Shown here in pieces: positions 537 to 61,479 of a stretch of 64,000 nt of DNA. Below the pieces are notes generated by a model. It ran no database searches. It saw only the letters and a list, made by a program, of their open reading frames with translations, and was not told the DNA's origin. Position 1 is the stretch's first letter. Each line of letters starts with the position of its first letter. A program made the translations under genes and the position numbers. This DNA comes from Heteronotia binoei (lineage: Eukaryota): contig NC_083239.1 in the NCBI RefSeq assembly GCF_032191835.1, positions 35,340,001 to 35,404,000 on the forward strand, read 5' to 3'.

Positions 537-563
537 GGATTCTTTTACTTCAGATACTTTTTC
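537..563 (-). CDS. Candidate micro-exon of gene 1, EKVSEVKES (27 nt, phase 0)
   Basis: Minus strand tgcttttag|GAAAAAGTATCTGAAGTAAAAGAATCC|gtaagt; canonical splice sites, open frame, length 3n. Confidence 0.6.
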
Positions 564-759
564 CTAAAAGCAAGCATAAATAACACAAATAAATGAAACA
601 TTGCAATGTGCACTCTTTTTTTTCACCCAATACTATTAATAGCTTTTGGAGGCTAAAACAAAGCATATGTTCCTTTTGGAAAGTGCAGTCACCAGTGTTG
701 GAATGTAGGAACTTCTTTATATGAAGTTGGTGCTGTGGCATTCTGCAGAGGGATCCTAC

Positions 760-813
760 CTCCACTCCCTTCATCAAGGAAGCAACCTTTAGCAAGTAGG
801 AAATTATCAGCTT
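760..813 (-). CDS. Candidate exon of gene 1, VASLMKGVE (760-786, 27 nt) or KLIISYLLKVASLMKGVE (760-813, 54 nt)
   Basis: Donor gag|gtagga; two alternative acceptors (ctaaag, tcaacag), both giving 3n open phase-0 exons. Confidence 0.4.
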
Positions 814-890
814 CTGTTGATGGTGGCTTCAGTAGTGACATTGTTTTGTAACCTCCATTGCCTTGATTTATTTATACTTCCCCACAATAC

Positions 891-914
891 ATTTTGAGTC
901 TCTTTGGGGAACTC
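891..914 (-). CDS. Candidate micro-exon of gene 1, EFPKETQN (24 nt)
   Basis: Good acceptor tctttctgttgcaag; weak donor aat|gtattg; open in phase 0. Confidence 0.35.
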
Positions 915-2451
915 CTTGCAACAGAAAGATCAAGGATAAGTTTTAACGTAAAGGCTAATAATAATAATCTCTATGAAGCAAGGATGACTTAGTTTGTTAC
1001 TCAGACTGGTTTTGCACAAACCTTGCTCCATGGCAGGCTTCCCTTTTTCTCCGGAGCAAGCTTCGTGATTTCGCACAAGCTGCTCTGCGCCGCCATTTTT
1101 CATCATGGCAACCCACGATTTGGTGCACGGCAACATAAACCTGTTTTCTCAGGCATCCCAGCTCCACCAGACCAGTGGAAATCAGATTTTTTTTTCCCAT
1201 TTAAAATGATTTAGTGATGCCAGCCAAACGCAGACATCCAACATGACAGGAGATTTTTAAAGGAACCCAACAGCCGCTAAGTTGGCAGGTTGGGCACCTC
1301 AGCCCCACTAGACCAGTGAAAATCAGATGTTTCCATTTAAAGTGTTCATGAGGTAGATAGTCTTACTTCATGAGGTAGGTGTTGGGTAAGGAAGCCCACC
1401 CCCAAGTGGAAAGGTGACCATCCTGCCACCCAAGGACGCAACCTGCAGGCTGGATCACCAAGAGAGGAGGAGAAGGAATGGCGGGGATATGCATGGGGAC
1501 AACCCTGATGGCTGGATCCAGGTTCAAAGATGGGTAGCTCAGCAGGGGGATGTTGACCATAAGGAAGGACAGCTTGTCTGCCCTGGCTCAGTCCAGGGGG
1601 AGTGGTGGAAGTTGAGAATGTCTTATTGTTTTGCCCCTCACCTATTCATGATTGGTGTTACGTTTTGCTATATATCAGGTTGCCCATGCACATAACAAGC
1701 TGAATTGATAGTGCGTGCCAATAAAGGCCAACTTGAACTTGAGGTTGCCCATTCAAAAAATAACACATATCTCTATAACAGAGAGCAGAATACCTGTTTT
1801 GTATGGTGTGCACTATTAATAAAATATAATAGCACAGAAGCCGGCTATGGTTTTGTTTTTTGAGAAGGAGGCACAAACTGATAACAAGACTTTTTGGACA
1901 CTTTTATGCAGCAGGATAGAAATCTCCTCTTTGGAGGTAGGAAAGATTAATAGAATTCTGGAAGTACATTTGAAACTTTGGGAAATTACCTTGATATATA
2001 GACAATTTGTAATAGCTATAGAGGCTTTATCACAAACCAGTCCATCTCTAGTTTTCTGGATTAAAAAATAAGTTATTTCTTCATATTTCATGTGCTCTTG
2101 CATTTCTCATTCACTACAGTGTCTTGGTCAATGCCATCTATTTTACCACAGAGAAAACAGGAATCACATATACCTCCCTTTGTTTTGCAAGTGTAAATAC
2201 AAACATCAATTGAACTGTAATAACATTTGAAGAAATCTCCTAAGTATAGTAACAAGATTCATATCTCAATGCCACACTCAGAAAATAGACAAACATATTT
2301 AGTCAAGCAAAATGTCCTGAATCCAAAACATTAAGAGTTTATGGACCACCTAAAAACATTCATTCCTACATATGAAAGTGGGAGGGGAAGATAAATACCT
2401 CTGAATGAAAAATATCACATGCTACCCTTTAGAGCACAAGACAGATCTTAC

Positions 2452-2520
2452 CTCAAGTCCTTTGATTTCTAGACAAAGGAGAGAGAGGAGGAGAAGGACG
2501 GCCACAGCCTGGAGCTTCAT
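2452..2520 (-). CDS. Signal-peptide exon of secreted-protein gene 1: MKLQAVAVLLLLSLLCLEIKGLE
   Basis: aagATG start, hydrophobic core, I-K-G cleavage-like motif, phase-0 donor gag|gtaaga; paralog at 30197-30265 keeps frame, length and donor. Confidence 0.8.
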
Positions 2521-5877: not shown

Positions 5878-7340
5878 TTAGGGCTTTGCACAAACACACA
5901 CACACAAACAAATGGGAAATATCCAGATCTGGAAATATTAGGTGAAAAAAAAATGGGTATTCTGGATATTTCCGAATAGTAATATCCAGTATAACTGAAT
6001 ATACAGAGATACTTGGCTTTTCCAGATATTCGGCTCCATTATATCCTATGGGCCTTTGAAGTCAATGGCAACAGAGGGTATAATGGAAGCTGCCTGGAGG
6101 GAAGGGGGTTTGGAAGAGAGTCCCCCAAACTGCAGGCAGCTTCAGGGAACTCTCCTCCAAGGAACCCTCAAGGGCCAAAAATATTGGACCAGGGGGTCCC
6201 ATTCCAGGGGCACTGAAAGAGGCTGCTCCCATCCCACTATTATACCCTATTGGCCATTAAAGTCAATGGCAACATAGGGTATAATCAAAGGCAGTTGGAG
6301 GATGGGGGGTGGTGGTGTTGAGGGAGAGGCTGCAGAACTCCAGCACAACTTCAGGGGACTCTCCCAAACACAACCCCCAAGGCCCAAAAAGACTGGACTA
6401 GGAAGTCCCATTCCAGAGACACTCAAAGAGGGTGCCCCCATCTCACCATTACACCCTATGGGCTATTGAAGTCAATGGCAACATAGGGTATAATCAAAGG
6501 CAGCTGGGGCACAGATGGGTTGAGCGATAGCCCCCAGACTGCAGGACAGCTTCAGGGGACTCTCCCACACATAACCCTCAAGGCCCAAAAAGAGTGGATC
6601 AGGGGGTCCTTTGCTGTCGCTGCCACACAAAGCCAAACTGATGAATCTCTAAAGGACCCAAAGCACTACATCCCTATACTCAATGGGCTCTGCTGGCATG
6701 GTACCAATATACCCAGATGCCAACTTCTCTGCCACATGAAATACAATCTGATCAAGGTCTGCAGACCTAGCTGCAGCAAATCCAGATGCCATCTCTCTAG
6801 TCCTTCCATAAGCAAGTCCCAAACAACACAAGGAGAGCTGGCCAACCACCTCAACCACGTCAAGCCAGGATTTCTTACCCAGATGCGAACTTCTCTGCCA
6901 CATGACACACAATCTGATGATGCCAACTCCCCAGCCCTGCCACAAACAAGTCCCAAACAACACAAGGAGTGTTGGCCAATCACCTCAACCATGTCAATCA
7001 ATGATTTCTTACCCCGATGCCTATAGGCAGAGGCAGACCCCAGCCAGGCAAAGGCCAAACCAGAGAAACAAACCAGAAAAGGAACCAGAAGCAACCCAAC
7101 TCTAACCCCGCCCCCCTACACACACACACCAGAATCAGTCCAGGTCACTCACAACAATGGCCTATGGGCCGAGGCAGGCTCCAGCCAGATGAAGGACAAA
7201 ACCAGAAAGAACCAGAGGCCATCCCCCAACCCCCAACAGAATCAGATTCAGGAAAAAAACAAAATAGCAATCCATCAGCAGTCACACAGCCTGGCCTAGG
7301 GAAAACAGGAAGAAATCAGACCCACACAAACAGATAAACC
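5878..7340. repeat. Unclassified interspersed element with three internal ~210-bp tandem units (6035-6600) and further internal repeats
   Basis: Recurrent motif aagtcaatggcaacatagggtataatc at about 6059, 6261 and 6469; no coding signature recognised. Confidence 0.45.
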
Positions 7341-9141: not shown

Positions 9142-9171
9142 GATTTCTGTTGGAGGTGCGGTAGTTTGTGT
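9142..9171 (-). pseudogene. Thr/Pro-rich micro-exon TQTTAPPTEI with mutated donor (atgagt)
   Basis: Acceptor catgtttttag intact; donor reads ATGAGT where paralogs have GTGAGT. Confidence 0.6.
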
Positions 9172-10190: not shown

Positions 10191-10223
10191 TTTTTCAACA
10201 GTTGTAGGTGCAGCGGCTGTTTC
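10191..10223 (-). CDS. Thr/Ala-rich micro-exon ETAAAPTTVEK (33 nt, phase 0)
   Basis: gaatgtttttag|...|gtgaatattt; homologous position to the 27-nt exons at 55-61 kb. Confidence 0.65.
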
Positions 10224-14721: not shown

Positions 14722-14742
14722 CGCAGCAGAAATTATCCACTG
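14722..14742 (-). CDS. Candidate micro-exon QWIISAA (21 nt)
   Basis: ttttttccttttcag|...|gtaagtac; strong sites; flanks duplicated around 17501-17524. Confidence 0.55.
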
Positions 14743-17500: not shown

Positions 17501-17524
17501 CAAGTAGTCTTTGACTTTTGTATA
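17501..17524 (-). CDS. Candidate micro-exon YTKVKDYL (24 nt)
   Basis: ccccctccctatttag|...|gtaagtac; strong sites; duplicate context of 14722-14742. Confidence 0.55.
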
Positions 17525-18164
17525 CTAAATAGGGAGGGGGAAAAGGCATGGTAATTTATTTTTAGACAATATTACATGGTATAGTAGCTACAATCTGTTT
17601 GTTCCCTCCATCTTTTCTATACCCCGGGGCTGATTTATCTTGGCACTTTCTCAAATAAAGTATGAGGGAAATAATTAGATGGCTGAAGAGTGCCATCCAA
17701 TGGGCAGGAGTAGGTTGGAGTTGATTTAAGAATGCCTCATTCTTTTTAGCAGGCTTTTCCCACCTGCTGCTGACCCACCCACTTTCCCTATAGCTTCGGT
17801 GGGATTAGCTGGTCTCCTTTCATGGGGCTAGACTGATATTTTNNNNNNNNNNNNNNNNNNNNNNNNNNNNNNNNNNNNNNNNNNNNNNNNNNNNNNNNNN
17901 NNNNNNNNNNNNNNNNNNNNNNNNNNNNNNNNNNNNNNNNNNNNNNNNNNNNNNNNNNNNNNNNNNNNNNNNNNNNNNNNNNNNNNNNNNNNNNNNNNNN
18001 NNNNNNNNNNNNNNNNNNNNNNNNNNNNNNNNNNNNNNNNNNNNNNNNNNNNNNNNNNNNNNNNNNNNNNNNNNNATATAAAAGAGCCTTGGGGTTACAC
18101 TGTTTAGGTCATAATTGGCCAATTCCACATTGATAATTTTAAATTATTGGTTTCAGTTAATGGA

Positions 18165-22290: not shown

Positions 22291-22305
22291 AATTTTTGGC
22301 AAACG
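22291..22305 (-). CDS. Candidate micro-exon RLPKI (15 nt)
   Basis: tcattaaatttag|CGTTTGCCAAAAATT|gtgagtatttt; family-typical donor. Confidence 0.55.
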
Positions 22306-22801
22306 CTAAATTTAATGAGAGGGGAAAAATGCATTAGGATCTATTTCTCAAAACAGCATCCTTACCCTCAAGACATATTTAAGAATGCATTTGCACTTCT
22401 AACTCAATTGAGGTTTGAACATTTTCATAAAGAGTGTTAGTAAATATATTTGTTTTAGCCCCTCTAACATTATTTCCCAAGTCTCTATTGGGAGTAAAAA
22501 TAGTTCTTAAATTCATTTAAAGTCTCAGGTAAATTTCTTAAATTTCCCTGTGTTTCTGTAACACCACTATGCACCTCTCTTAGTTCCTCTTTACCTAATT
22601 TCTCCCTGGAATATAACAGTCTGAGTATTTTCTCCATGAGGAAGAACGGTGAGTAATAACATTTTTAAATAAATAAATAATAGTTCTGCCTTGGTTTTAC
22701 AACATGATCTAAGTCTCCTCTTTGGGGGTGGGATACATTCACAGAATTCTGGAAGTCCATTGGAAACTTGAGGATATTATCTTGATATGTAGATAATACG
22801 T

Positions 22802-43937: not shown

Positions 43938-44313
43938 TGAGGGAGATGACTTGCCCGACACAGGGCTTCAGGAAAGAAAATCAGGCAGACACGTGCAACT
44001 AGTGCCAAAAGGTGTATTAACATATATACACGACAAGTGCTCTCTTGTGCAGTCTATACAATATCACCTCCACGGACAAAGTGCTTCGCCTAACCACCAT
44101 CTCACAGGGAGAGACCTGTGTGATGCACACACAGATCATATATAGTCCAAGCAGCCAATCCTGGCCGTGCTGACTCAGCAGATTGCATCACTTGGCTTCT
44201 GCCGGCTCAAGCCGGTCTGCTGATCAGGTCACTGTGACCTAGCCTGGCAGCTAGATCACCAGCTGTCATACTGTAGCTGTCAGACTGGGTTTATGTAGAT
44301 TCTTGCTCCAACA
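43938..44313 (-). mobile_element. Copia 3' LTR (376 bp, lacking the outer ~22 bp), preceded on the minus strand by a PPT-like agattaggaggtg
   Basis: Appears identical by eye to 47259-47634. Confidence 0.9.
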
Positions 44314-44398
44314 CACCTCCTAATCTATTTAAACCCAGTGCACCATAACACTTTACACAGTTTACATACATGTCCACCAGCAACATTACAGTTCATAT

Positions 44399-47059
44399 TT
44401 ACGTAGCTCGGAACCCTTTCCGGAATTCGTTCAGGAACTCATCATGATTGTAAAACACATCATCGTGTTCCTGTTCAGCCAGCTCTTTCAGACGCTTGGC
44501 TTCAGCCTCCTTCTCCCTTGCCTCGCACTCTGCCACCCAGGCTTTCCATTTCTTAGCCTTTTCTTTTAACATTTCCTCAAATCCGGGTGGGTCTGGATTG
44601 ACAGTCAGAGTGACATAGGGACACTTGTACCTAGCGGGACGTTGGCCTTTGGTGGACCTGGCAGACACCCGTGGCCCTGTGCTTGGACCAGCTTTGTCTT
44701 CTTCGGGTTGCTCTGTTCCCACCTCCTGGGCTGGTTGCTCTGCCCCTGTAATTGGGTGTTGAACCTCCTGACTCTCACACTTTACCTCCAGTTCCTGCAT
44801 TTGAGGCTCTGCCTCCTGACTCTGCTCGTCGGGCTCTGTGCCAGCATTCGGCTCACCTTCTCCAGCCCCACTGGGTGCCACCTCCTGGGCTGGAGTTCTG
44901 GGCTGCGCTCCAACATCGTTATCGCTACTTGGCAGCAGGACAAATTGTTTCTGCAAGGAGTGCAACCTTGGCCAGCTGCTTTCTTCATTGAACTGGGCAC
45001 TCTTACTAAGTGTTATCTTGCTTTTGCTATTGCAGAAACGATAACACCTGGCCCTTGGCTTGTAGCCCAGAAAAATTAGGCTCTCTGCCCGGACATCCCC
45101 CTCCCCGCTACTCGTGGAGTGGATGCCAACCCGAGCCCGTGACCCAAAGACTTTTAAAGAACTCAAATCTGGGGTCTTGTTCAACAGTAACCTGTAAGGC
45201 ACATTTTTCACAGTATTACACCAAACCCTATTTTGCAAAAAAACAGCTGCATGTATGGTTTCTGCCCAATAGGTCATTGGCAGTTGTGCATCCTCTAACA
45301 TGCAATACATCACATTCTGCAATACAGCCCCATGCCCATTTTCTCGGGGCGTTGCCGGGTTCGTCAGACGGTGGGCGATGCCCTTGTTCTCCAGCCAACG
45401 TTTCATCTGGTTAGATAAGAATTCCCCCCCTCTGTCGGTTTGTACAGCCAGGAGATTAACCCCTAATTGTCTCTCCACTGCTTTGACCCACTTGGTGAAT
45501 GTCTTATACACCTCAGACTTATGCACCATGGTGAAAACCCACGCGTACCTCGTGTGGTCGTCGGTGGCCACCAAGCAGTATCTCCTCCCCGACAGACTCT
45601 TTGGCAATGGGCCAATAACGTCTAAATGGACTAGTTCCAGGGCTCGTGTGCTTTCCCTTGAGCTTTCTTTAGCAACAGCACACGCCTTGCTTTTGGTCTT
45701 CTTGCAGACCTGGCAATCCAAGTAACATTTGCAAGGATTTACTTTCAAACTAGGCACAAGCTCCAGGGTTTTCTTTAACGCCCTAAATCCGCAGTGCCCA
45801 AGTCTCCTATGGAGCAAATGTATACAATTATTGTGCACAGGCTCATTCGACACCTGAGCCACCTGGGCACAATCACTCTGGACCACATACAGTTTACCTT
45901 CCCTCTTTCCTGTCACAAGCAACTTTCCCCCACCTCCCAGGATTTTGCAGCAGGTTTTCTCAAATCTCACCTGGTATCCCTGGTCAAACAGTGTGCTAAC
46001 ACTCAACAGGTTAGACTGCAGTGAGGGTACATACAACACATTTTGCAACATACATTTCAGTGCAGGAAATTCCACATTGCCTGAGCAAACAGAATTGGCA
46101 GTGGTCCCATCAGCCAATCTCACATACTTATGCTCAGGACTGTCAATGTTTTTCAACAACTCCTTCTCGCAGCAGAGATGGCTCGTTGCCCCGGAGTCTA
46201 AAATCCAAGCAGACCCTGTGCTCTCTACTGCAGACGTGACCAGCCGGGTTGCTTCCTCACACGGGCTGGCGGTCCTCCGCTCTCGCCGCACACGCCCCCG
46301 CCTCTTCTCCCTCTCAGGGCAAGCTCGGAGCAGGTGCTGCGACGACCCGCATCCATAGCAGCGACGGACTGCAAACGCAGTCGGCTCCACTTCCTCCACC
46401 TTCGGACGCCTGCCAGCAGCAAAAGCTGGCTCATTCTTGGCTGTCTTCCCGGACACACCGATAACAGCACGCTGCCTGGCCGACACCCCCGGACAGCTCA
46501 CGGCCGCAATTCTCTCTTGGAAGTCAAGCAGGTGGGCACAGACGTATTCCATGGTCAGGGTCGCTACGTCCACCGTCTCCAGAGAAGTTATCAGGGGAGT
46601 GTACTCAGGTGGCAACGACGACAGCAAAATGTACACTCTGTCGTCTGGAGCTACAGTCTTGCCTCTTGCCTCCAGCTCAACGAAACAGTCCGTTAGCCGT
46701 TTGATGTGATCTTTCACACACCCTCCAGCCGGCATAACGGTGCGGAACATCCTCCTTGTCAAGGCCATGAGGGAACCAGCAGTGGTGCTAACATGCACCG
46801 CACTCAACGCGTCCCAGGCAGCCTTGGGAGTGTCCTTCCCTCGCACATAAACCAGCTGGTCATCTCCTATAGACAGCACTATGTTGGCCAGTGCCTTATC
46901 CGATAACACAGTCTCGGCAGGAGATAAGTCAGCAGGGGGGTTACTCACGAACAGCCATTGCCCTTCACGCTTGAGGTAGTGTTGCATTCTCAGGCTCCAC
47001 ACCGCGTAGTTGGCTGAGGTGAGCTTCTCAACGGCTACTCCAAGCTGTTGCTGAGCCAT
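44399..47059 (-). CDS. Ty1/copia gag-protease-integrase polyprotein (886 aa) without RT/RNase H
   Basis: CYGCGSSQHLLRAC knuckle, WILDSGATSH protease, GKLY, HRRLGH...CQVC, LVHLDVIGP, QTDRGGEF; no YVDD motif. Confidence 0.95.
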   Translation of the reverse strand: MAQQQLGVAVEKLTSANYAVWSLRMQHYLKREGQWLFVSNPPADLSPAETVLSDKALANIVLSIGDDQLVYVRGKDTPKAAWDALSAVHVSTTAGSLMALTRRMFRTVMPAGGCVKDHIKRLTDCFVELEARGKTVAPDDRVYILLSSLPPEYTPLITSLETVDVATLTMEYVCAHLLDFQERIAAVSCPGVSARQRAVIGVSGKTAKNEPAFAAGRRPKVEEVEPTAFAVRRCYGCGSSQHLLRACPEREKRRGRVRRERRTASPCEEATRLVTSAVESTGSAWILDSGATSHLCCEKELLKNIDSPEHKYVRLADGTTANSVCSGNVEFPALKCMLQNVLYVPSLQSNLLSVSTLFDQGYQVRFEKTCCKILGGGGKLLVTGKREGKLYVVQSDCAQVAQVSNEPVHNNCIHLLHRRLGHCGFRALKKTLELVPSLKVNPCKCYLDCQVCKKTKSKACAVAKESSRESTRALELVHLDVIGPLPKSLSGRRYCLVATDDHTRYAWVFTMVHKSEVYKTFTKWVKAVERQLGVNLLAVQTDRGGEFLSNQMKRWLENKGIAHRLTNPATPRENGHGAVLQNVMYCMLEDAQLPMTYWAETIHAAVFLQNRVWCNTVKNVPYRLLLNKTPDLSSLKVFGSRARVGIHSTSSGEGDVRAESLIFLGYKPRARCYRFCNSKSKITLSKSAQFNEESSWPRLHSLQKQFVLLPSSDNDVGAQPRTPAQEVAPSGAGEGEPNAGTEPDEQSQEAEPQMQELEVKCESQEVQHPITGAEQPAQEVGTEQPEEDKAGPSTGPRVSARSTKGQRPARYKCPYVTLTVNPDPPGFEEMLKEKAKKWKAWVAECEAREKEAEAKRLKELAEQEHDDVFYNHDEFLNEFRKGFRAT

Positions 47060-47236
47060 CGTGCCGACTCCTCCTCACGGCTGGCTGCCGACGTCCCTCT
47101 GGCTCTCAAACAGAGAACGGTGGTGCTTCTGTGTCCTTCACCGGCGTTCCTCGCCTCCGGCTCTTTCCAAACTCACAGTCAGCTCAACTCTCAACTCTCT
47201 CCTCCGCGCAGCGGAACCGCCCTGGGCCCATAACCC

Positions 47237-47634
47237 TGTCGGAGCGGGAGTAGCAGAGTGAGGGAGATGACTTGCCCGACACAGGGCTTCAGGAAAGAAA
47301 ATCAGGCAGACACGTGCAACTAGTGCCAAAAGGTGTATTAACATATATACACGACAAGTGCTCTCTTGTGCAGTCTATACAATATCACCTCCACGGACAA
47401 AGTGCTTCGCCTAACCACCATCTCACAGGGAGAGACCTGTGTGATGCACACACAGATCATATATAGTCCAAGCAGCCAATCCTGGCCGTGCTGACTCAGC
47501 AGATTGCATCACTTGGCTTCTGCCGGCTCAAGCCGGTCTGCTGATCAGGTCACTGTGACCTAGCCTGGCAGCTAGATCACCAGCTGTCATACTGTAGCTG
47601 TCAGACTGGGTTTATGTAGATTCTTGCTCCAACA
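47237..47634 (-). mobile_element. Copia 5' LTR (398 bp, TGTTGG...CCGACA) followed by ggttatgggcccagg PBS-type motif (47221-47235)
   Basis: TG...CA termini and the characteristic copia post-LTR motif. Confidence 0.9.
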
Positions 47635-47929
47635 GTATGAGGCCTAGCCTTTCATTCTTGGTGCTTTCTGATCATTCCTATATGCTAAAAAAAACCCTGT
47701 ATTTCTGCCTTTACTAATAGTGGCATAACCCTGGGGACAGTATGAAGCAGGTGAAAAACATTCCCTCTAACTGCTGATGTGAAGAGCTGGAGGGGGGAAA
47801 TTCCTCCTCAGTTTGCACAAGAAGTAGCCAGTCCCTTGGTTACCCATATTGAGTTAACTGATCTTGTTCCACTAATGGTAATAATAAGGCCATTAAAAAA
47901 AAGCACACACACACACCATTTCAGTGCAC

Positions 47930-48270
47930 TTGCAATTTTTTATATTTTATTTTTGCAAAGCTTTTGGCATTATCCCAGGCAATAGAAGGACAGTTCTTCT
48001 CATCCTCAGCCTTTTTGTTATAGACGAAACAAAATCAGTAAGTGTAATAAAATTTGTCTAAATTGTACTACTTTGATTGGTGGTTTTCCATGTTAATTTT
48101 ATAGGGTTAAAGGGATAGCATAGAAGACATATCAGCAAGGCATCGTCATCGTGGTCCGGCATCGTCATCATGTTCCAGTATCTTCAGTCAGGCATCTTCT
48201 TTAATTGATTTGAAGAGGAAAGAACAGGTATCAGGAGAAGCATCTCAAGGAACTAGAGCTCAAATCTTTA
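47930..48270 (-). other. Candidate non-coding terminal exon of the Thr-rich gene (AATAAA at 47946-47951)
   Basis: Acceptor ttacttacctactttcttag|TAA...; downstream polyA signal. Confidence 0.35.
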
Positions 48271-49632
48271 CTAAGAAAGTAGGTAAGTAATTTACCACAG
48301 ACTAGGGAAAGGACTCTGCTAAAGGTAAGTACTTTCAGATTCTACTTATATCAGAGCACATCCTTTCTTCCATTCATTAAAATAAGCTTGGAAATTATTC
48401 AGCATTCCTAGGCTGCATAACATCTTTCTCCTCATCAACACTATGTACTACAGGAATTTATAAAAAATGTTGTTCCCGCCATCATTTTTTGAGTTCTGAG
48501 AGTTTAATGGTTGCCACAGGAAGTGGGACCCATGACAAAATGGCTGCCCTGAAAGCTTTTACATCACACAGTGACAGTGTGGTGAATCCAACCACTTTGT
48601 ATGATGCCTTTCTCTAACTTAAGGGGAGTTCCTCAAACTTAGATGGCTGTCCCTCCAATGCAAGACACATTTCAAACTTTCAAGGGAAAAATGCAGGAGG
48701 AAATGCTCTTTCTTTTTCAGTATGGTGGTAGGATAAGACGAAGGTCCACACCAGTAAGTTTGAAGGCAATTGTCTTCCCATGACAAAGGTAGCTGTTTGC
48801 CTGTTGACATGACCTCCAGATGCAAAAATGATACCTCAAGATTTCTCCAGAGGCATCTCTTTTTGGAGAATGTGGAGGAAACCCAGAATTGACTCTTTGG
48901 TTTGGAAAAGAGAAGTTGTTCATTTTCAGCTTCCAAAGGTAAGAAAGTTCCTTTGGAATGTAAATTCATTCTACTAAGGATAATATTTTCATCCAGCACC
49001 AGAAACCTTTACTGGGCCTATGCATTACACTGAAGAATATTTCCCAAACAACTCAGGAACCCACCCTGAGCCTGCATTGCGGGAAGGGCAGGACATAAGA
49101 ATGAATGAATGAATGAATGAATGAATGAATGGATGGATGGATGAATGAATGAATGAAAATACACATCAACACAAGAAATTTCCCTCACCACAAAACTTCA
49201 GTCAATTATCAAATAGTTGACTCCCCCATCCCTAATATTATTCATTGACATTTGCAGATACATTGAAAGTAAACTGAATAGAATGTGGTAGTGTTGTTCC
49301 TATTTCACACCATCAAGGGGAAAATGCAATAAAGTAAGGAAATTCTACTTGGGCTCATGAGTAGTTCCTACTCTCTTCAATGGGAACTGTGCCCTGTAAC
49401 AGTTTTCTACTGATCAGCTTTCTGAAATTCTCAGCTTATGAATTCCTCCTCATATTTGGCATATAAAATCATGGTGTTGTTTTATTTCAAAATTTCCAAC
49501 TTCATGGTGCTGATTTATTGTGTTTTTGTGGTTTCAGAGGCTCCTTGACCATTGTATTAAAAAGATGTTGAAGTCAAAGTTGTCACTGAGGTTTGTATAC
49601 ATAGAAAGAAATGATGGCGTAGAAATACTCAC

Positions 49633-49665
49633 TTCTGGCTCAGCATGAGTTTACTGCCCACCGGC
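49633..49665 (-). CDS. Candidate penultimate exon AGGQ* plus 18 nt of UTR (33 nt)
   Basis: tttctgcattttag|GCCGGTGGGCAGTAA...|gtgagtatttct; same splice context as the Thr-rich exons. Confidence 0.55.
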
Positions 49666-50743: not shown

Positions 50744-52901
50744 CTATTGTAACTCATATATGGGGAAGAGGGAGATTAATGAGCTTGCACAGACCTTTGA
50801 TTTATTTTGTGGCATGCAATACAAAGCTGTAAAGCTGTACTACTGTTGGGTTATTTTAAAGTTAATCTAATGGCATTCCAAGAGCCAACCTTACAATGCT
50901 AACATATGCTTTGAAACAAAGGCACAGCCTACTTCTATACTCCAGAGACTGAGATACTGGCTGGGAGTTTCACCCTGAAGTCTGGCTGTGAGTACCACCT
51001 GTAGCATGAACTAACAACTTATTCTATTACATAAACCACTGGTGATTAATAAAAATATAGTGGCCTACCAACAGCCAAATCTGTTTCCATTCTCTGTATG
51101 TAGATTCTAATTTCCTTTTGTATCCCCTAAAGGCTATAAGCACAACCTCCAATTCAGAGTCCAACCGATTGATTTGCTGTCTTCTTTTTTAAAACTCTGA
51201 CTACTGTGTAGAGGGCAATATGGTTGAATTCAGATGGCCAATTTGGTCCAACACAGGAATAGCCCATGATCAAATCAAAAAGGTGCATTCAAATGCACAC
51301 ATCTGGGTCCCACCTCGCTCCCACCCTTATCTTGTCCACCACCATCACTATACTGCTTCAAAAAGCTACCACTTACTAAGTATCAAACTATTCATTTTTA
51401 AAAAAATAACATAGGTACTTCTGTTGACCCAAACAGAATTTTTCTAACCTGATAGAACCCTTAATATGTTAACAGTAATAGTGATGATGATTCCACATTC
51501 GAATTGCCCAATAACCTATCAAATATGGCATCCACTCAACCCTAATCCATTCATCCTGGTAGAGAGAAACTAAAGAACATAGTATTGTAGAGGGCTCCCT
51601 ACACTCAACTCCATTTCCTAGGGGTGGTGCTCCCTTTTTAAAAAGAGGAATAAAAAACATGAACAAATGACTATGCCATTCTATCTAACATATCAGGTTC
51701 CAGTGACTATGGATTTTTTCTCATTGTATAACGATTCTTCTATTCTTAATCCTCACTCTAATAATAATCCCTCCACTAATAGTAACCTTAACAGTTTCTT
51801 GCCTGATGTACCAAGAACTCGTGTTTATCTTCAGTTAATGATATGTGAATCAGGAATAGGGATAGGCATGGAATGCAAAAATGGTGGTTTGTTTCATTTC
51901 ATGGTTTGTTGGTGTGCCCAATTCAGTGGCTCAGTTCATTTTGTGAGGTTTTTTAATTTTCTGAATGAATTGTGGTTTGTTGATTCATTTGGTTTGGGAA
52001 GGCATGAAATGTCCTGGAAGTGATGTTATCACTCTGGTTATGTTGCTGGGGGCATGCTCTATCCCTTGGGGAAAAACCTTTATGATAATCATAGAGTTTT
52101 TTTCCGAAGTGATAGAGCATCCCCCCGGCAATGTGCCCGGTGCAATAACATTACTTTCATTTCATGTCATCATGCCAGGCAAGTTGTGACTTGTGAGAAG
52201 GATCCCCTGCCCATAATGACACAGATGAACTGCCCAAAAAACCAAGCTGCTGTGTTTTTTGAGTTGTATCTGAACCTATTCAGTATTACCCATGAATCTG
52301 CTGTTTTAGGCAATAATCGGGAATCCTCACAGATTCAAATGAAGCAGGATAAGTAGAACATGAGCATATGAACTGTTAGTAATGATCATTGGTCTCTTTC
52401 TCACATTACCCTCACTCTTTCTCACATGATCCTTTGAGATCGATGGGATCCTTTTGAAAACTGTGAGGTAGAATCCTGAAAATTATGGATGCAAAGTGGA
52501 GGCCATAACTTTTCCCTCCAAAAGTTGCCACAACTTCCTGCCTTTAAGAAACAACTTATCTCTTTGTTTGCCTAATTTGACTTACAAGGACTTATGAGGA
52601 GACACTGCTGATGCTTGCCAGAATTGTGATATTAAAGGGGAGAGTGGGATATATATTTGATAAAATAAAAAAATATGGTTTCATTTGATATTTCATTGCA
52701 CTGATTTGTCTTACTCTTACTTTCCCATTGCATGGTTTCTAACTCTCCTCTGGCACAATATTCAGAAGAATATAGAATAAGTATCAACCTAAAATCCAAA
52801 CCATAATGACATTTAAATTATGCATGTTATGGCAACTTTGATTCCTTGAACAATGTCATTGCCATAAGAGTATGGACTTCAGTTTCAGATTCTACACTCG
52901 C

Positions 52902-52931
52902 AGATGGTGTAGCAGAAAGAGCCTCATCTTC
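52902..52931 (-). pseudogene. Dead micro-exon EDEALSATPS (acceptor AC, donor GC)
   Basis: Homologous position in the repeat unit; tttttac|GAA...TCT|gcgagt. Confidence 0.5.
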
Positions 52932-55166
52932 GTAAAAAGCCAGAAATAATAAAAATGTACACGTTATTAGTTATGATCCTTGATCTGTTTCATGCAATAG
53001 AGTCAGTAAGCTTGAGGGAAATACCCTTTTGTAAACTGCTAACACGAGGGACTGACTCTGCAAATGAATTCACAGAACATTCATGCTCTCAGTCTTGGCT
53101 AGATTCCATCCATGGAGTTTTGTTCAACCTGGGAGGATGGTGAGCAACTGCTGATGGTGGTTAAATAATGTGTTTTTTTTTTGCTAATAGGCCACCTTCA
53201 GGTATGGAGTTCATCCTATTCCATGGGCCAATAAGATAAAATGAGCCCATAAGGGAGTGTCATTTTTTAATTGTGCCCCCCCCCCTAAAAAAAAAACATG
53301 TAGATCTGGTCCTGGTCACTTTCATTCCCTTGATTCATAGATACTTTCCCCATGGACTTTTTTTTAACAGGAATGCACAGAAACATAGTTCCGGCTGGCT
53401 TGGTATCAGGGGGTATGGCCTAATATGCAAATGAGTTCCTGCTGGGCTTTTTCTACAAAAAAGCCCTGTGTGAAACAACGGTGACATCCGGGGGTGTGGC
53501 CCAATATGCAAATATGTTCATGATGAGCTTTTTCTACAAAAAAGCCCTGATTTTCCCCAATACAATTGGAGAGGACCTAGGTTTCAACACATCAGTTCAT
53601 CCATGCTATTCAGAGAGGATTCCCTTTTCCAAATGAAGAGATTTCCCTGATATATGTTTCTCTGCCAGTCAGTTACTGTGACCTGAGGACTTCAAGTTCC
53701 ACTGAAAACTTAGAGACTCTCTAACTGAATGGTGTGAGAACCCTTGAGGAAGAGAATACCGGTTGATCAATGAGTTCCTACCACTTCCTGCCTTTTGAGG
53801 CAGGCTATCTCTTGTCCTAGTTTTCATTTCCATAAGCATTGGACAAATTTGGCTTTTGATCTACCTCTCATGCAGGCTCTAACAATGAGTGGGTATCATT
53901 TGGTAATCTGGTGCTTCCTTGGGCTGATTTGTCTGTATTACTCTCTCCCTCCCCCACAGTTTCCTACATTACTTTAAAAGTTAGAGTGATAAATGATGAC
54001 ATAGAAATGATGTATGTCATGGCAACTTTTGATTCCTCAACCAAAATCATTGTCATTAAGAGAACAGACTTCATACTCAAAGCTGGTTTTTCAAATCAAG
54101 ACATTCATCTGATGTGAGTTTTTTCTGCCAGTCATTATTTGTGACATTAAAAAATCAAAGTTCCACTGATAAATGAGAGCCCTCCCAAGTGATCTGTGTG
54201 AAAATATTTTTGGAAGAATCTGCAAGTCACTTCCTAAGGAGGCAGGTGTCCTTTTTTTTTCTAGTTTTCCTTTCCTTAAGCAATGGGCAAATTTGACTTT
54301 TGATCCACTGCTCATTCTGGCTCCAATAGTGAGTGGGTCCCATTTGATAAGTTATTGCTTCTTTGGACTCATCTGTCTGAATTAGTCTCCCCTCAACACT
54401 GGTCAATTGTTTCCCACTGTCCTCTGCCACAAGTTTCGACAAAAGTTTGTAGAATTAGTATTAACTTAAATGTTAACAATAATGCAGGATGACATGAAAA
54501 TGACGTACATCATGGCAACTTTGATTCCTCAACTAGTGTAATTGTCATTAAGGGTATGGACTTCATTTTTCACCTGTCAACATCCCCACCCCCCTCAGTT
54601 GAGCCTACTTTCAGCAGGATCTGAATTTAAACCCAGTGATCTCTCAGTCTGCTAGGGTCCCTTCATGGAGTTTCAGCCCAGCTTATGAAGATTTACTTAA
54701 AGATCCAACTAATTTAGCTTTTCATGATCCACAGCTCAAGCTGATTCTAATTCTTAGAGGGTTCCACTTGATCCTTTGATGCTTCCTTGGGCTGATTTGT
54801 CTGTATTAGTTGCCCCACTGCCCACCTGATGGTTTCCTATGGTCCTCTATCCCAAGTTGCAACAAAAAAGATGTGCACCAGTATCAACTTAACTTTTAAG
54901 AATAATAAATTATGACATTAAAATTATGTACAACATGAGAATCCTGATTTGTTAACCAATACATTAAGAGTATGGACATCGTTTTTCACCTGTCAACTTT
55001 CCCCCTCAGCTGAGCCCCAGACCACTGTGTTCCTACAACCAAAGTAGGTTCTCAGTATTCAACATGGTATTCTATTTGTTCTGACTCTCTCTCTATCCCT
55101 GCCTTCCTGCACCTTCCATTCAAGCTTACATGGACTTAAACTGCCTTGATTAAAAGAAATACTCAC

Positions 55167-55193
55167 AACGGTTGTAGTTGCAGCAGTTGTTCC
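55167..55193 (-). CDS. Thr-rich micro-exon GTTAATTTV (27 nt, phase 0)
   Basis: ccatgtttttag|...|gtgagtatttc. Confidence 0.7.
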
Positions 55194-55815
55194 CTAAAAA
55201 CATGGATGAGTAATATAAATATATGAAATGTTCATTATGATCCTTCGTCAGTCTCATGTTATGCTGTCAGTGGCTGTAAGAGGTAAACAGGAATGCTAGG
55301 GATACAATGGAGGACTGCGTTCAGCAGGGCCTGAATCTGAGGATTGACTCATGGAAACTTGGTGCTCTCCAAGTTTGCTAGGCTCCGTCCATGGAATTTC
55401 TGCCCAGCCAATAAAGATATGTGGGAATGCTTGATGCTGGTTCAATGCAGTTTTGTTTGCTAACAGGCCATTTTCAATGCCTTGATTTTTGTGAATTTCT
55501 CCCTACACATTTGGAGACTTTTACGGCTCAACACTTCTGCTTTCCTTGCTATATCAGAGGAGACCCTCTTTTTCAAAGCAAGAGATTCACTGGATGTGTG
55601 TTTTTCTGCCAGTCACTTTTTGTGACCTACCAAAAATATAAATAAATCAAAGTTTTACTGCTAAATGAGAAGCTCTCCTAGTGATCTGTGTGAAAATTCT
55701 TGTGGAGGAGGCTTCCATGACTCTCTCCATGACTCTCTCCCTGTCCCTGCCTTCTTGCACCTTCCATTCATGCTTACGTGGGCTTAAATTGTCTTGATTA
55801 AAAAGAAATACTCAC

Positions 55816-55842
55816 AGCAGTTGTAGTTGCAGCAGTTGTTCC
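55816..55842 (-). CDS. Thr-rich micro-exon GTTAATTTA (27 nt, phase 0)
   Basis: ccatgtttttag|...|gtgagtatttc. Confidence 0.7.
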
Positions 55843-56803
55843 CTAAAAACATGGATGAGTAATATAAATATATGAAATGTTCATTGTGATCCTTCATCAG
55901 CCTCATGCTATGCTGTCAGTAGCTGTCAGTTGAATGAGGGAATGTCAGGGATACTTTAGTGGACTGTGTTCAGCAGGGTCAGAATCTGATAAGTGGTTCA
56001 TGTTAACCCAGTGCTCTCCACGTTTGTTAGGCTTCCTCCATGGAGTTTCTGCCCAGCCAATAAAGATGTGTAGGAATGGCTGGCAAGCGACTCCTGATGT
56101 TGGTTGAATGCAGTTTTGTTTGCTAACAGGCCATCTTCACTGCATTCATTTTTTTTGTGAATTTCTCCCTACACATTTGGAGACTTTTGGGGTACAACAC
56201 ATCATCTTCTCCATGCTATATCAGAGGTCCTCTTTTTCAGATCAAGAGATTCACTTTGTGCATGCTTTTCTGCCAGCCATTTTTTGTGAACTGTAAATAA
56301 ATCAAAATTGCTCTGATTAATGAGAGGCTGTCTCCCAAGTGGCCTTTAGGAGGCAGGTGACCTTCACTTAAGTGAATGACTAATCTGGCTTCTTATGATT
56401 CAGAACTCATGCTTGTTCTATTTGTGCGAAGGTTCCACTTGATCCTCTGATGCTTCCTTGGACATCTCCTCCCTCCTCACAATTGTTTCTATAAAAGGAG
56501 GTAGAAGCAGTAATAATCTATATGCTAAGAATGATAAATGATGACATAGAGATTATGTACATCATGGCAACTTCGATGTCTTAACCAACGTCATTCTCAT
56601 TAAGAGGCTGGACATCATTTTTCACCTGTCAACTATCCCCCTCAACTGAGCCCCAGACCATTGTGTTCCCATACCAACAGTAGGTTCTTAGTATTCAACA
56701 TGGTATTCTATTTGATCTGACTCTCTCTCTGTCTCTGCCTTCTTGTTTCTTCAACACATTCTTCTGTGGAGTTAAACTGCCTTGATTAAAAAGAAATACT
56801 CAC

Positions 56804-56830
56804 AACGGTTGTAGTTTCAGCAGTTGTTCC
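56804..56830 (-). CDS. Thr-rich micro-exon GTTAETTTV (27 nt, phase 0)
   Basis: ccatgtttttag|...|gtgagtatttc; the phase-1 reading contains TGA, favouring phase 0. Confidence 0.7.
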
Positions 56831-57344
56831 CTAAAAACATGGATGATTAATATAAATATATGAAATGTTCATTATGATCCTTTGTCAGTCTCATGCTATG
56901 CTGTCAGTGGCTGTAAGAGGTAAACAGGAATGCTTGGGATACAATGGAGGACTGCGTTCTGCAGGGCCTGCATCTGAGAATTGACTCATGGAAACTTGGT
57001 GCTCTCCAGGTTTGCTAGGCTCCCTCCATGGAATTTCTGCCCAGCCAATAAAGATATGTGGGAATGCTTGATGCTGGTTCAATGCAATTTTGTTTGCTAA
57101 CAGGCCATTTTCAATGCATTGATTTTTGTGAATTTCTCCCTACACATTTGGAGACTTTTAGGGCTCAACACTTCTGCTCTTCATGCTATATCAGAGGTCC
57201 TCTTTTTCAAAGCAAGAGATTAATCTGATGTGCGTTTTCCTGCAACTCGCTTTTTTGTGAACTAAAGAAAAAATGGTAAAGGAGAGGCCTCCCAAGTGAT
57301 CTCTATGAAAATCCTTGTCAAGTCAAGTCAGCCTTTATTGGCTT

Positions 57345-58215
57345 AAAAATAATGCTACAGATTAATATAGTCAGAAGCCTTGGAGTCCTACTGGAGCCTT
57401 CACTATCAATGGAGGCCCAGATAGCAGCTACTGCCAAGTTCACCTTTTTTCATCTGAGGCGGGCAAGGCAGTTGGCTCCCTTCCTAGAGCATCAGGATCT
57501 GGCAACAGTGATCCATGCAACGGTCACCTCGAGACTAGATTACTGTAATGCCCTCTACATGGGGCTGCCTCTGTGCCGAACCCGGAAGCTGCAGCTAGTG
57601 CAGAACGCGGCTGCCAGATTGTTGTTGGGGCTCCCAAAGTGGGAGCACATACAGCCGGGGCTGTGTGAACTGCACTGGCTGCCAGCTATATACCGGATTC
57701 GTTACAAAGTGCTGGTCATCACCTTTAAAGCCCTATATGGCCGAGGACCTGCCTACCTTAGGGACCGCCTCTTCCCGTATGAACCCCAGAGAGCACTGAA
57801 GTCAGCAGGGAAAAACCTGCTGACTATTCCCGGGCCAAAAGATGTAAAACTCCAGAGTACCCATACTTGGGCTTTCTCTGTAATGGCCCCACAGCTGTGG
57901 AATCAGCTTCCAGAAGAAATGCGGGCCCTGCGGGATTTTGAACAGTTCCGCAGGGCCTGCAAGACCGTTCTCTTTCGAATGGCTTTCACTGAGTAATTGC
58001 TAAGTAAATTCACCATCTGAATAGCACCAACATATCAACTTATTAACATTTACTTATTGTTTTTAGAATTTTAATAGTTTTTAATTACCTGTTGGTTTAT
58101 ATTGTCAGTTATAATTTAATGTATTTTAACCCAATGTATAACTAAATTGAATTTTGTTGTGAGCCGCCCTGAGCCTGCTCCGGCGGGGAGGGCGGGATAT
58201 AAATAAAATGTGTTG
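57345..58215 (+). mobile_element. L2 LINE 3' fragment
   Basis: VRSLGVLL...SRLDYCNALYMGLP...LWNQLP; gagccgccctgag tail. Confidence 0.85.
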
Positions 58216-59118
58216 TTGTTGTTGTAGTATAAAACAGGATAGAAACACAACTTTCATGTACACTTGTATAAACAAAAAATATTTCTGTGATATCCTTTGT
58301 TGTGACTTTAGAGCAGAGTACAGAAACTTGGCTGACCTCTCAGTAACATTGATTGAAAAATCTTTCAAGAGTCTATGGACCTTAAGTGCATCAAAGCAGT
58401 CCATCATACTGGCTAGAACGGTATAAATACATAAAACATAGAGTCATATACAGATGGCAGTGCAGGAGAACATGAGTAATCAGCCCCGTAGGCAGGATTT
58501 GAAGAATTGGGGGGGGGGGGCTTGATTTTTTTCAGGGGGCACATAGTGGCCCCAACCTCCATGGCCTTCTCTCCTACCACAGCTGAGGAGGAAAGCTGCC
58601 AGCTCACTGCCATACAGCCTCCCCACTCCCCACAGCTGCCCCAAGGTGATCCCTTTCTACCCCTCTTCCAGCAGCTCTGGTGGGGAGCCACTCAGAGATT
58701 TAGATACGTGCCACATGGTCTCCTGCCCTTACCTGTGGCATGATCCAGCTAGGCAAGCCCAGCGGGACAAGGGGAGTGGTGGAAGGCACCACCTTGTCAC
58801 AACTGACTTCTGGGGCTACAAGACCTCCAATTAGGATTTCTTCCTGTTGGAGGACGAGCTGAGGCTGCCCAAGCGCAGCTCCCACCCTCGCTTGGGTGGC
58901 CAGCAAGACCAGGCCAGAAAATCCCTGCAGGCGAACATCACCTCTCCACTGATCCCCAGCCCCGGACTGCAGCCAGAACCTCCACTTGTATGTGCCAGCC
59001 TACCCTACCCTGCCCTGTCTGCAACGGAGCCATTCGCCCCCTATCCCCGCCACCCCACTTGAGAGGCAGAATGGTCTCTTCTTGCAGGCACCCTCTAGCC
59101 CAACAACAGCCCAACGTG

Positions 59119-59611
59119 GAGCTTAACTTTCAGTCCTGGGCGTTGAAAGTGCCCCGTTGTTTCTGCTTGCTGAGGGGTCAGAGATTTCTTCCAGCCCCTA
59201 AGCAAGCAGAAGCAACTCCGAGCTTAACTTTAAGTCCTGGGCACTGAAAGTACTCCGTTGTTTCTGCTTGCTGAGGGGTCAGAGATTTCTTCCAGCCCCT
59301 AAGCAAGCAGAAGCAACATGGAGCCTAACTTTCAGTCCTGGACACTGAAAGTGCTCTGCTGTTTCTGCTTGCTGAGGGGTCAGATTTCTTCCAGCCCCTA
59401 AGCAAGCAGAAGCAACTCAGAGCTTAACTTTCAGTCCTGGGGGCTGAAAGTGCCCCATTGTTTCTGCTTGCTCAGAGATTTCTTCCAGCCCTTAAGCAAG
59501 CAGAAGCAACGAGGAGCTTAAGTTTCAGTCCTGGGCTCTGAAAGTACCCCGTTGTTTCTGCTTGCTGAAGGGTCAGAGAATTCTTCCGGCCCCTAAGCAA
59601 GTGGAAGCAAC
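59119..59611. repeat. Five tandem ~100-bp units, each containing a ~61-nt hairpin
   Basis: Unit starts at 59119, 59220, 59321, 59420 and 59514. Confidence 0.9.
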
Positions 59612-61160
59612 GGTGTATGATGACGGCAGAATGGAGAAGGATGCAGACGAGGCACTGGAGGCTGGTTAGGGGCCCCAAATCAAGGGGCCCTGCCTAGCAG
59701 TCAAAGGGCTGTTCCCCCACAGGCCCCCTCATAGCTACGGACCTGTGAGTAATTGACTCAACACATTTTTGTTTACAAGGGCAATACCTAGCTGAATAGG
59801 CTATTTTATTGAATCTGCTATCAAGAATAGCAGAGGGCATAGCATTGCATCTAGCGAGAGAAAACACTCCGCATTGTTGTGGCATCTGCAAGGAAGATAG
59901 GTAAGAAGCCATCTTTTCTGTGCTAAGAGGAATTTCAAAGCTCAAAGGGGCTTTCACTTAATTTTGTTAGTCAGACTATTTAACTCCTGGTGCTCAATGT
60001 CTAACAATCCCTGTGGAAGAGGCTGCCAAATTGCCAAAGTTCTCCTGCTACTTCCTGCCTTTAGGAGTCAGGTTACCTCTTTCCTTGTTTACTTAAGCAT
60101 CTGACTAATTTGGATCATGCTGGTTCTGACTTTAAGGGTGTATCATTTGATAATTTGGGGAGGATTGTGAGCAACTGCTGATGACTTCTTATTTTTTTTT
60201 AATTGTCTATAGGCCAACTATATTGTCTCAATTAATGTATATTTTCGGCTTTCAGTTTAGACACATAAGTCATGACACATCAGTTCTTTGATGTTATGCC
60301 TAGGGATGCCATATCCCCCAGTGGGAACAGGGCTCTCTTGCTGCCAAGCCCCACTACCACTGGCCAAGAGACTGACAGAGGAATTACTCCTCCCCCCAAA
60401 AAGAGACGAACACCAAAAACTGACTCCTGGGCAAAAACTCTATGATAGAAACTAATTCTACAATAGAGCTTTGGCCAAAGAAACAGAACATCCTCATCTC
60501 CCCAATATCCCTGATGTGCCTATATCACCCACGTCAAATAGGGACATTGTTGAAATGTTGGCATCCTTCCCTGCCCCCAGTAAGTGAGCCCCCTCTCAGC
60601 TGCTTGGTGGGACCTGGCAACACAGGAGGGGACCCCCTTTTCCAAAAGAAGAGACTCACCTATCGTGGGTTTATCTGTCAGTCACTTAATTTGACTTGAA
60701 GAGTTCAAGGTCCACTGATAAATAAGAGGATCTCCAGCTGATCATTGTCAGAACCCTGGTAGACATGGGTGCCCGAAAGCAACACAGCTCCTACCGCTAC
60801 CTGTCTTTAGGAGGCAGGTGACTCATAAACTCAATTTCCTTCACCTCAGCTTTGGACTAATTTGGATGAACATGAGCCACTTCTCATGCTTGCTGTAATT
60901 GTGATAGTGTTTCATTTGATAATTTGGTGCTTCATTGTGCTGGTTTGTCTGAATTAGTCTCCCCCCACAGAAAATGGTTTCTTTCTCTTGTCTGGCATAA
61001 TTTTCACCAGAAGGATATAGAATCAGCATTAAATTCAATACTAAGAAAAATAAATAATGTCTTTGATATAATGTATGCTAGACAATTTTTATTTATTGCT
61101 TAACCAATGTCCATGTCATTAGGAGTATAAATTTCATTTTTAAGATTGAGAAATACTCAC

Positions 61161-61187
61161 AGTTTTTGGTGTAGTAGCCTTTTCCAC
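61161..61187 (-). CDS. Micro-exon VEKATTPKT (27 nt, phase 0)
   Basis: tccatgtttttag|...|gtgagtatttc. Confidence 0.7.
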
Positions 61188-61464
61188 CTAAAAACATGGA
61201 TGAATAACACAAATATACAAATAGTTATGATTCTTGATTGGTTTCATGCTTTGCTGTCTGTAGCTCTCAGAGGCACGAGCTCCCTCCTCCATCTTTAAAT
61301 GGACTGTGATCCTGGTTCCAGACTCCCTGGTCTCCCTTTTTGTGTTACCATTTATGGACTGAGTTAACTCTGGCCTAGTGTCAGAGCCACAAGACTCTTA
61401 TGGTTATGAACTTATATTATGTGAACACAGGCAAACTGCTTCTATGGACATTCAGTGACATTAC

Positions 61465-61479
61465 CCACTTGCCTACTGT
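61465..61479 (-). CDS. Candidate micro-exon TVGKW (15 nt)
   Basis: tcactacctatag|...tgg|gtaatg. Confidence 0.3.

Follow-up and report, generated by a model that had tools for sequence, protein, structure and literature searches.

Gene layout at the locus

The window analysed here is a stretch of 64,000 nucleotides from the 2.63-Gb genome of the gecko Heteronotia binoei, scaffold C17:35340001–35404000. It holds parts of three tandem genes on the minus strand, designated A, B and C, that are predicted to encode secreted proteins from a signal peptide exon followed by very small exons. An open reading frame (ORF) survey showed no long host ORF within the 64 kb, as a first-pass annotation of this DNA had stated, and transposons are abundant, with fragments of long interspersed element (LINE) reverse transcriptases and a Ty1/Copia-like element with an 886-aa ORF. 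Gene A has its 3' half in the window; its promoter is located about 25.6 kb past the window end and the gene extends down to ~47925. Of gene B, the part from the promoter to the fourth micro-exon is in the window; the gene follows gene A collinearly only as far as ~9050 and lacks a 3' end of its own. Gene C has its first two exons in the window. A single 3' end at 35.321 Mb is common to genes B and C. Since gene B lacks its own, it is either truncated or, as part of a B/C unit, serves as an alternative first exon leading into gene C, and any splice joining gene B exons to gene C exons would keep the frame.

The promoter together with exon 1 is found in 38 copies in the genome, all 38 on C17 between 35.17 and 37.93 Mb (~2.8 Mb) and nearly all on the minus strand, and when promoters are paired with 3' ends across this cluster the gene lengths are 19–80 kb. 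An intact ATG, a hydrophobic core and a phase-0 donor of the GTAAG type are found in 29 cluster copies, and two further copies apparently use a GC donor. Together with the losses in other copies, this pattern fits birth-and-death evolution. Some cluster genes (paralogs at C17:35689.6 kb and 35614.0 kb) carry a promoter-less and degenerate second copy of the signal exon 1–1.5 kb inside intron 1.

Promoter and signal exons

Both strands were scanned for ATG-started hydrophobic segments of 14–30 codons ending at a donor, and the minus strand gave exactly two matches, paralogous to each other and both in phase 0. They have 23 codons each and are the two signal peptide exons that the first-pass annotation had pointed out. 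Coordinates below are positions in the window, and all exons, promoters, candidates and cassettes described lie on the minus strand. The TATA box of gene B is located at 30328–30344 (TATAAAA at 30342–30336), is kept in the 29 aligned copies, and stands 33 nt upstream of a TCACAC resembling an initiator (Inr). Exon 1 of gene B (30197–30309), with its ATG at 30265 and the donor GTAAGG at 30197, is predicted to contain a 5' untranslated region (UTR) of 44 nt and a signal peptide of 23 codons, MKLQAAAAILLISVLCLEVKGQE, ending in phase 0. In gene C the TATA box at 2583–2599 is likewise conserved in the alignment of 29 copies, and exon 1 (2452–2564; ATG at 2520, donor GTAAGA at 2452) has a predicted 5' UTR and a 23-codon signal peptide, MKLQAVAVLLLLSLLCLEIKGLE, also in phase 0.

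The alignment of exon 1 of genes B and C continues for about 230 nt upstream, with the TATA box included. Among the 29 aligned copies a near-invariant TATAAA is followed 33 nt downstream by an Inr-like TCACA, and the TATAAAA is placed 77 nt upstream of the ATG, which holds also for Sphaerodactylus. The 5' UTR, TTGAAAGGCACCAAAGAGAAGCCAAG-ATG, is more conserved than the coding part in this alignment, and the ATG, the hydrophobic core and the GTAAG donor are conserved as well. In the most distant copies the similarity spans exactly the region from the TATA box to the donor, and this limit together with the TATA/Inr arrangement indicates that the signal exon is the first exon of the gene. Signal exons of 20, 21, 22 and 23 codons occur in the cluster, all of them in frame. 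The predicted cleavage at VKG/QE fits the -3/-1 rule and would leave about two mature residues in the signal exon.

Micro-exons and their cassettes

In gene A, the region 52700–61300 is an array of direct repeats, in which exon and intron together form duplicated units (cassettes) of about 650–1000 bp. Four micro-exons of 27 nt are predicted here. The first one, at 61161–61187, encodes VEKATTPKT in phase 0 and is flanked by ccatgtttttag and gtgagtattt; the others, recognised by their cassette flanks, are located at 56804–56830 (GTTAETTTV), 55816–55842 (GTTAATTTA) and 55167–55193 (GTTAATTTV), so that VEKATTPKT precedes three successive Thr-rich repeats of nine residues. The inferred mature part of gene A is encoded wholly by exons of 9–33 nt.

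The first micro-exon of gene B (22291–22305, 15 nt) encodes RLPKI, and gene A has paralogous cassettes of 15 nt and 9 nt. It is followed by an exon of 24 nt at 17501–17524 (YTKVKDYL), for which there are two paralogous cassettes with flanks 63–87% identical and an exon identity of about 40%, by one of 21 nt at 14722–14742 (QWIISAA), also with paralogous cassettes, and by a Thr/Ala-rich exon of 33 nt at 10191–10223 (ETAAAPTTVEK), identified by its cassette flanks and having a weaker donor, GTGAAT. Comparison of the cassettes shows a further, degenerate one at 9142–9171, where the donor is mutated to ATGAGT. Gene C has a micro-exon of 27 nt at 537–563 (EKVSEVKES), with flanks conserved in five Sphaerodactylus cassettes of 27–30 nt.

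Counting the stop-bearing exon at 49665–49633 described below, ten micro-exons in the window are backed by the flanks of paralogous or orthologous cassettes. They are 15–33 nt long and all ten are multiples of 3 and open. Together with the two signal exons this gives a solid count of 12 exons, or about 16 segments when the weak ones are added. The first-pass annotation had listed more than 15 short AG/GT segments of 12–54 nt, open in phase 0 and with lengths divisible by 3; frame and divisibility hold, while the well-founded set is smaller and its size range narrower.

Cassettes were typed by homology within a stretch of 110 kb, which gave a Thr-rich type (27 nt at 61187, 56830, 55842 and 55193, and 33 nt at 10223), a second type at 563 (27 nt) with relatives of 33 and 30 nt outside the window, a third at 22305 (15 nt) with relatives of 15 and 9 nt, a fourth at 17524 (24 nt) and 14742 (21 nt) with one relative of 30 nt, and a fifth consisting of the stop exon at 49665–49633. 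When five gene A exons beyond the window and one of gene C are added to the ten, 16 of 16 micro-exons within conserved cassettes have open frames and lengths divisible by 3, and the length differences inside the types are always multiples of 3 (27/33, 24/21/30, 15/9 and 27/33/30). In a genome search, every copy of the cassette DNA lay within the C17 cluster and on the minus strand, and this DNA is therefore not a dispersed transposon. The pooled identity is 62% for the exons against 78% for the 60 nt upstream and 67% for the 60 nt downstream, and in two of the types the exons are only about 40–47% identical compared to 63–87% for the flanks.

A degenerate cassette of 32 nt, out of frame and recognised by cassette homology, is located between genes A and B at 39512–39543. 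Two open segments are weak candidates that have no family support, one of 66 nt in gene C (1990–2055), at a cassette homologous to the KIPID cassettes of Sphaerodactylus in which the original donor is lost, and one of 48 nt at 25458–25505. The 220-nt segment 25380–25600 around the latter has its sole other genomic copy on scaffold C3 (134.47 Mb, 81% identity), outside the cluster. A module of about 100 bp is found at 29737–29867 and 22700–22798, and up to 8 copies are present in paralog introns (paralog at C17:35614.0 kb). No convincing exon was found in these two copies, only a conserved AG/GT interval of 6 nt within an invariant CCAG-AATTCT-GTGAAT, and the module could represent a cassette reduced in size or a micro-exon of 6 nt. 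The intron repeat families D3, D5, D7 and D8 contained no exon.

3' ends of the genes

The penultimate exon of gene A (49633–49665, 33 nt) encodes AGGQ followed by a stop codon and 18 nt of 3' UTR, and has a good donor. The stop is conserved, together with the sequence around it, in gene C and two further genes of the cluster, and the exon, read as AGGQ-stop-THAEPE, is homologous to the Sphaerodactylus exon AEQQQIHAEPE. The stop exon of gene C, outside the window, encodes KYWQ and then a stop in the same CAGTAAACTCATG context as in gene A. About 1.3 kb downstream of the stop exon, genes A and C share a conserved block of some 520 nt, which ends at an AATAAA and a GT-rich element where the similarity stops. 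In gene A the non-coding last exon is placed at 47925–48300, with an approximate 5' edge, an AATAAA at 47951–47946 and the GT-rich downstream element at 47917–47904. This last-exon block is conserved with gene C and Sphaerodactylus, and its 11 copies in the cluster are confined to it.

Relatives in other geckos

A profile of 29 signal exons was searched against 1.84e9 representative proteins with a threshold of E<=1e-3, giving six matches of which four are aligned at the N-terminus: XP_054854771.1 from Eublepharis macularius (“uncharacterized protein LOC129342850 isoform X18”), XP_048357619.1 from Sphaerodactylus townsendi (“translation initiation factor IF-2-like”), and two hypothetical proteins of Gekko kuhli whose reading continues into intron 1. 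No protein from outside the geckos was found at this threshold, in line with the lineage-specific family of small secreted proteins suggested by the first-pass annotation. For Eublepharis LOC129342850, at least isoforms X17 and X18 are listed in RefSeq. The Eublepharis protein maps weakly to the present genome, via its signal exon, and further protein searches with the two gecko relatives returned only themselves and one more Sphaerodactylus protein. In literature searches on micro-exon families in lizards and geckos, no paper describing the family was found.

XP_048357619.1 was placed on the Sphaerodactylus locus with exact matches and phase 0 required, and all of its 249 residues are explained by 22 coding exons with all 21 coding introns in phase 0. 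There is a signal exon of 69 nt, two larger exons with weak donors and 18 micro-exons of 9–33 nt, which sit in catg..ttttag / gtaagtat contexts. With blastn, the promoter and exon 1 of gene C are 80% identical to the Sphaerodactylus locus over 312 nt, and collinear intron blocks, cassette flanks, the stop exon and the 3' exon are conserved between that locus and the cluster region. Both RefSeq models have the signal peptide family in common with the genes described here, and the gene of XP_048357619.1 shares in addition the promoter, the 5' UTR, the cassette flanks and the penultimate and 3' exons. It differs in that the penultimate exon, AEQQQIHAEPE, is read through and the last exon encodes N followed by the stop. 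The mature parts are nearly unrelated, with Pro/Gln/Lys-rich repeats in the gecko RefSeq models (P/Q-rich repeats such as GQLPAAPQP) against Thr/Lys/Glu-rich sequence here. An RKRR site in the Sphaerodactylus protein suggests possible processing by a convertase. The name “IF-2-like” reflects low-complexity sequence and not function. Exons of 9–15 nt in a Gnomon model presumably need transcript alignments, and the gecko RefSeq models would on this ground be indirect evidence of splicing.

Strand and frame statistics

The context ccatg..ttttag / gt(a/g)agtattt, described in the first-pass annotation, is real. The motif TTTTAG-N(9–39)-GTRAGT occurs 6 times in the window, 6/6 on the minus strand, against 0.78 expected, and for GTRAGTATTT, allowing at most one mismatch, there are 27 occurrences, most of them on the minus strand, where 9 are expected. 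Short AG..GT segments with a strict intronic donor number 20 on the minus strand, 15 of them multiples of 3 and 12 open, compared to 11 on the plus strand with 2 multiples of 3 and 1 open (binomial P 1.7e-4, Fisher P 0.007). Taking all lengths and length differences as roughly eleven independent draws, the chance that every one is a multiple of 3 is (1/3)^11, about 6e-6. A generic scan with splice-site position weight matrices, in which there was no strand excess (59 candidates on each strand) and the Thr-rich exons were missed on account of their weak pyrimidine tracts, was replaced by this family-context scan with the strict donor.

Assembly gaps and other elements

No exon or reading frame touches an assembly gap. 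The gap 2770–2927 is located just upstream of the conserved promoter block of gene C, and the sequences on either side of it align with the Sphaerodactylus locus without change of order or orientation, the matching blocks being about 66 nt apart there. The gap 20515–20654 is inside a repeat insertion in an intron, with flanks collinear with the paralog at C17:35689.6 kb, and the gap 17843–18075 is intronic, 319 nt upstream of the exon at 17524.

Between genes A and B, at 43512–47740, there is a Ty1/Copia-like long terminal repeat (LTR) retroelement, whose 886-aa ORF of the gag-integrase type is located on the minus strand at 44399–47059. It has 100% identical segments (43933–44313 and 47254–47634, 43512–43617 and 47635–47740) and an internal duplicate of 99% identity (43623–43897 and 46317–46591), and appears to have inserted recently, perhaps with rearrangement or nesting. 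A tRNA-derived short interspersed element (SINE), which we take to be Sauria-SINE-like, is found at about 29530–29735 on the minus strand in intron 1 of gene B, where it breaks up a module that the paralogs otherwise conserve; an element of this kind would point to a squamate genome. Tandem repeats in introns and intergenic space of the cluster include one at 6036–6603 with a period of 209 bp (2.8 copies) and one at 59112–59611 with a period of 101 bp (5 copies), and a repeat at 1298–1682 is the only stretch of the gene C region covered by one small DNA run. Elsewhere in the genome, C2:1.39–2.16 Mb holds more than 45 WAP-domain exons in a cluster of 0.8 Mb, with a second small cluster at C2:43.61–43.67 Mb. 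This is a large expansion of the WFDC type, unrelated to the micro-exon family on C17.

A probable gecko family of micro-exon genes

The micro-exon family to which the locus belongs is real and of considerable size, has hardly been characterised, and is predicted to encode secreted proteins. As read from the DNA, the window likely covers part of a tandem array of secreted-protein genes, so far known only from geckos, which follow a phase-0 micro-exon plan. In this plan, a TATA/Inr promoter would be followed by a first exon with about 44 nt of 5' UTR and a signal peptide of 20–24 codons ending in phase 0, then by micro-exons of 9–33 nt, all multiples of 3 and each within a duplicated exon and intron cassette, and finally by a short penultimate exon, holding the stop codon in the present genome, and a non-coding last exon with an AATAAA. 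The predicted products are short secreted peptides, disordered and rich in Thr, Pro, Lys and Glu. Secretion is inferred from the layout of the n, h and c regions and from a V-x-G context at the cleavage site, and mucin-like O-glycosylation is probable for the Thr-rich runs. With all introns in phase 0, the frame survives the duplication, loss or skipping of a cassette, and such changes would allow a quick diversification of the family and many isoforms. Our best guess for the role is secretion at exocrine or mucosal surfaces.

Several observations weigh against this. The ATG or the donor is lost in at least five cluster copies, and gene B may be decaying since it has no stop or 3' exon, one dead cassette and one weak donor. 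The spliced 64-aa model of gene A gave no protein sharing three 5-residue words. The RefSeq models of the other geckos are automatic, splicing in the present genome is a prediction from DNA, and secretion, glycosylation and alternative splicing are deduced from sequence and isoform numbering only.

Going further, we propose tentatively, and with less than even confidence, that the roughly 30 genes are a gecko-restricted vertebrate counterpart of the micro-exon genes (MEGs) of schistosomes, having arisen independently of the genes for secretory calcium-binding phosphoproteins (SCPPs). The mature micro-exons would diversify faster than their own introns, the intron flanks being held constant for the splicing of tiny exons, and the phase-0 cassettes would be shuffled, duplicated and alternatively spliced into combinatorial secreted peptides serving a gecko-specific secretion, for instance chemical signalling, coating of surfaces or eggs, or mucosal defence.

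The alternative that survives best is a true SCPP offshoot, in which a P/Q-rich SCPP gene left the SCPP locus within the gecko lineage and afterwards underwent expansion. The defining features of SCPP genes are taken here from what Kawasaki and Weiss are said to have described. In the SCPP plan exon 1 is non-coding, exon 2 contains the signal peptide and about two mature residues, the coding introns are in phase 0 and an SxE motif is found early in the protein. The casein/SCPP-like architecture noticed in the first-pass annotation is borne out. As in the caseins, statherin/histatin, ODAM, AMTN, FDCSP and SCPPPQ1, we find secreted, disordered proteins predicted from many tiny duplicated exons, phase 0 in all inferred exons here and in every coding intron of the Sphaerodactylus model, a signal exon that by prediction ends about two residues into the mature protein, a stop that can precede a non-coding last exon, tandem clustering and fast evolution, and the P/Q-rich repeats of the gecko relatives fit in as well. 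Against this, the signal peptide is carried by the first exon, behind a TATA box and Inr of its own, and not by an exon 2 that follows a non-coding exon 1, and by inspection no SxE is present in the inferred early exons RLPKI, EKVSEVKES, GKQGFGKAGS and NSPRN. The two gecko relatives match no PDB entry and no Pfam family, and the missing Pfam match excludes those SCPP families that Pfam contains. Sequence comparison relates even SCPPs to one another only with difficulty, and the Pfam search for ODAM is uninformative as it gave no match anywhere in the genome.

SCPP genes are traced to SPARCL1, and their signal peptides are conserved (PMC10888740). In the present genome AMBN (PF05111) is located on C4 at 33.30 Mb, and SPP1 (osteopontin) on C9 at 100.87 Mb with SPARC_Ca_bdg exons, putatively of SPARCL1, at 101.22 Mb, so that a linkage to SCPP loci, which the first-pass annotation had wanted checked, is not seen: the cluster lies outside the AMBN and SPP1 scaffolds, and the only SPARC-type match on C17 is weak and about 13 Mb away from it. 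SCPP membership is not supported by these comparisons, and an offshoot of this kind is unlikely; of the two options left by the first-pass annotation, unannotated SCPPs or a convergent family, the independent origin is favoured.

It is less likely still, and improbable on the whole, that the copies in the window are dead relics, that is unexpressed pseudogenes. The missing 3' end and dead cassette of gene B, the degenerate cassettes at 39543 and 9171, the cluster copies without ATG or donor and the many transposon insertions in introns would fit such a state, but in genes A and C the signal exons and splice sites are intact, the micro-exons are open and a conserved stop is retained along with a poly(A) signal, and every length change is in frame. 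A chance origin of the short AG..GT segments within a non-coding tandem repeat or transposon is strongly disfavoured, since, although the cassettes are repeats and the generic splice-site scan gave equal numbers on both strands, they occur only inside the C17 cluster, they have the frame and length statistics given above, and their homologs are coding exons of a RefSeq model in another gecko.

If the reading as an independent gecko family is true, it is a second vertebrate origin of the micro-exon design, unlinked to SCPP loci and apparently restricted to geckos; symmetric micro-exon chains for secreted proteins are known from SCPP genes and parasite MEGs. With intron flanks conserved across gecko families, the genes would be a clean system for how the splicing machinery recognises exons of 9–33 nt, and likewise for how duplication of exon cassettes drives fast protein diversification. 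Ordinary ORF-based or ab initio annotation misses such genes, RefSeq gives one of them a misleading name, and the 2.8-Mb cluster would otherwise resemble a gene desert.

Comparison with known systems

Schistosome MEGs have exons of 3–81 bp, long introns and secreted products (PMC10526429). The resemblance to the gecko genes is close in architecture (PMC10526429, PMC4350168), as in both the coding region consists mostly of symmetric micro-exons (3–81 bp in MEGs, 9–33 bp here) separated by long introns, the product is secreted, or predicted to be so, from a conventional 5' exon with a signal peptide, numerous isoforms are listed, and exon evolution is fast. In gene A and in the Sphaerodactylus model, most of the coding sequence is in symmetric micro-exons between the signal exon and the 3' exon. 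The MEGs belong to parasitic flatworms, have no homology to the C17 family and are spread over many chromosomes, whereas the gecko genes form one tandem cluster of 2.8 Mb, for which alternative splicing is only suggested by the isoform numbers of the Eublepharis RefSeq entries. Common descent with the platyhelminth genes finds no support in the signal-exon profile, which matched gecko proteins only.

Precursors of frog skin peptides, conotoxins and the REST/seminal-vesicle genes are also similar in having a conserved promoter, 5' UTR and signal exon, followed by mature exons that diverge at or beyond the rate of the introns. The WAP/REST-type cluster of the present genome is located on scaffold C2 and not on C17, and in the three families just named the mature part is encoded by one or two ordinary exons, in contrast to the chains of micro-exons found in the gecko genes.

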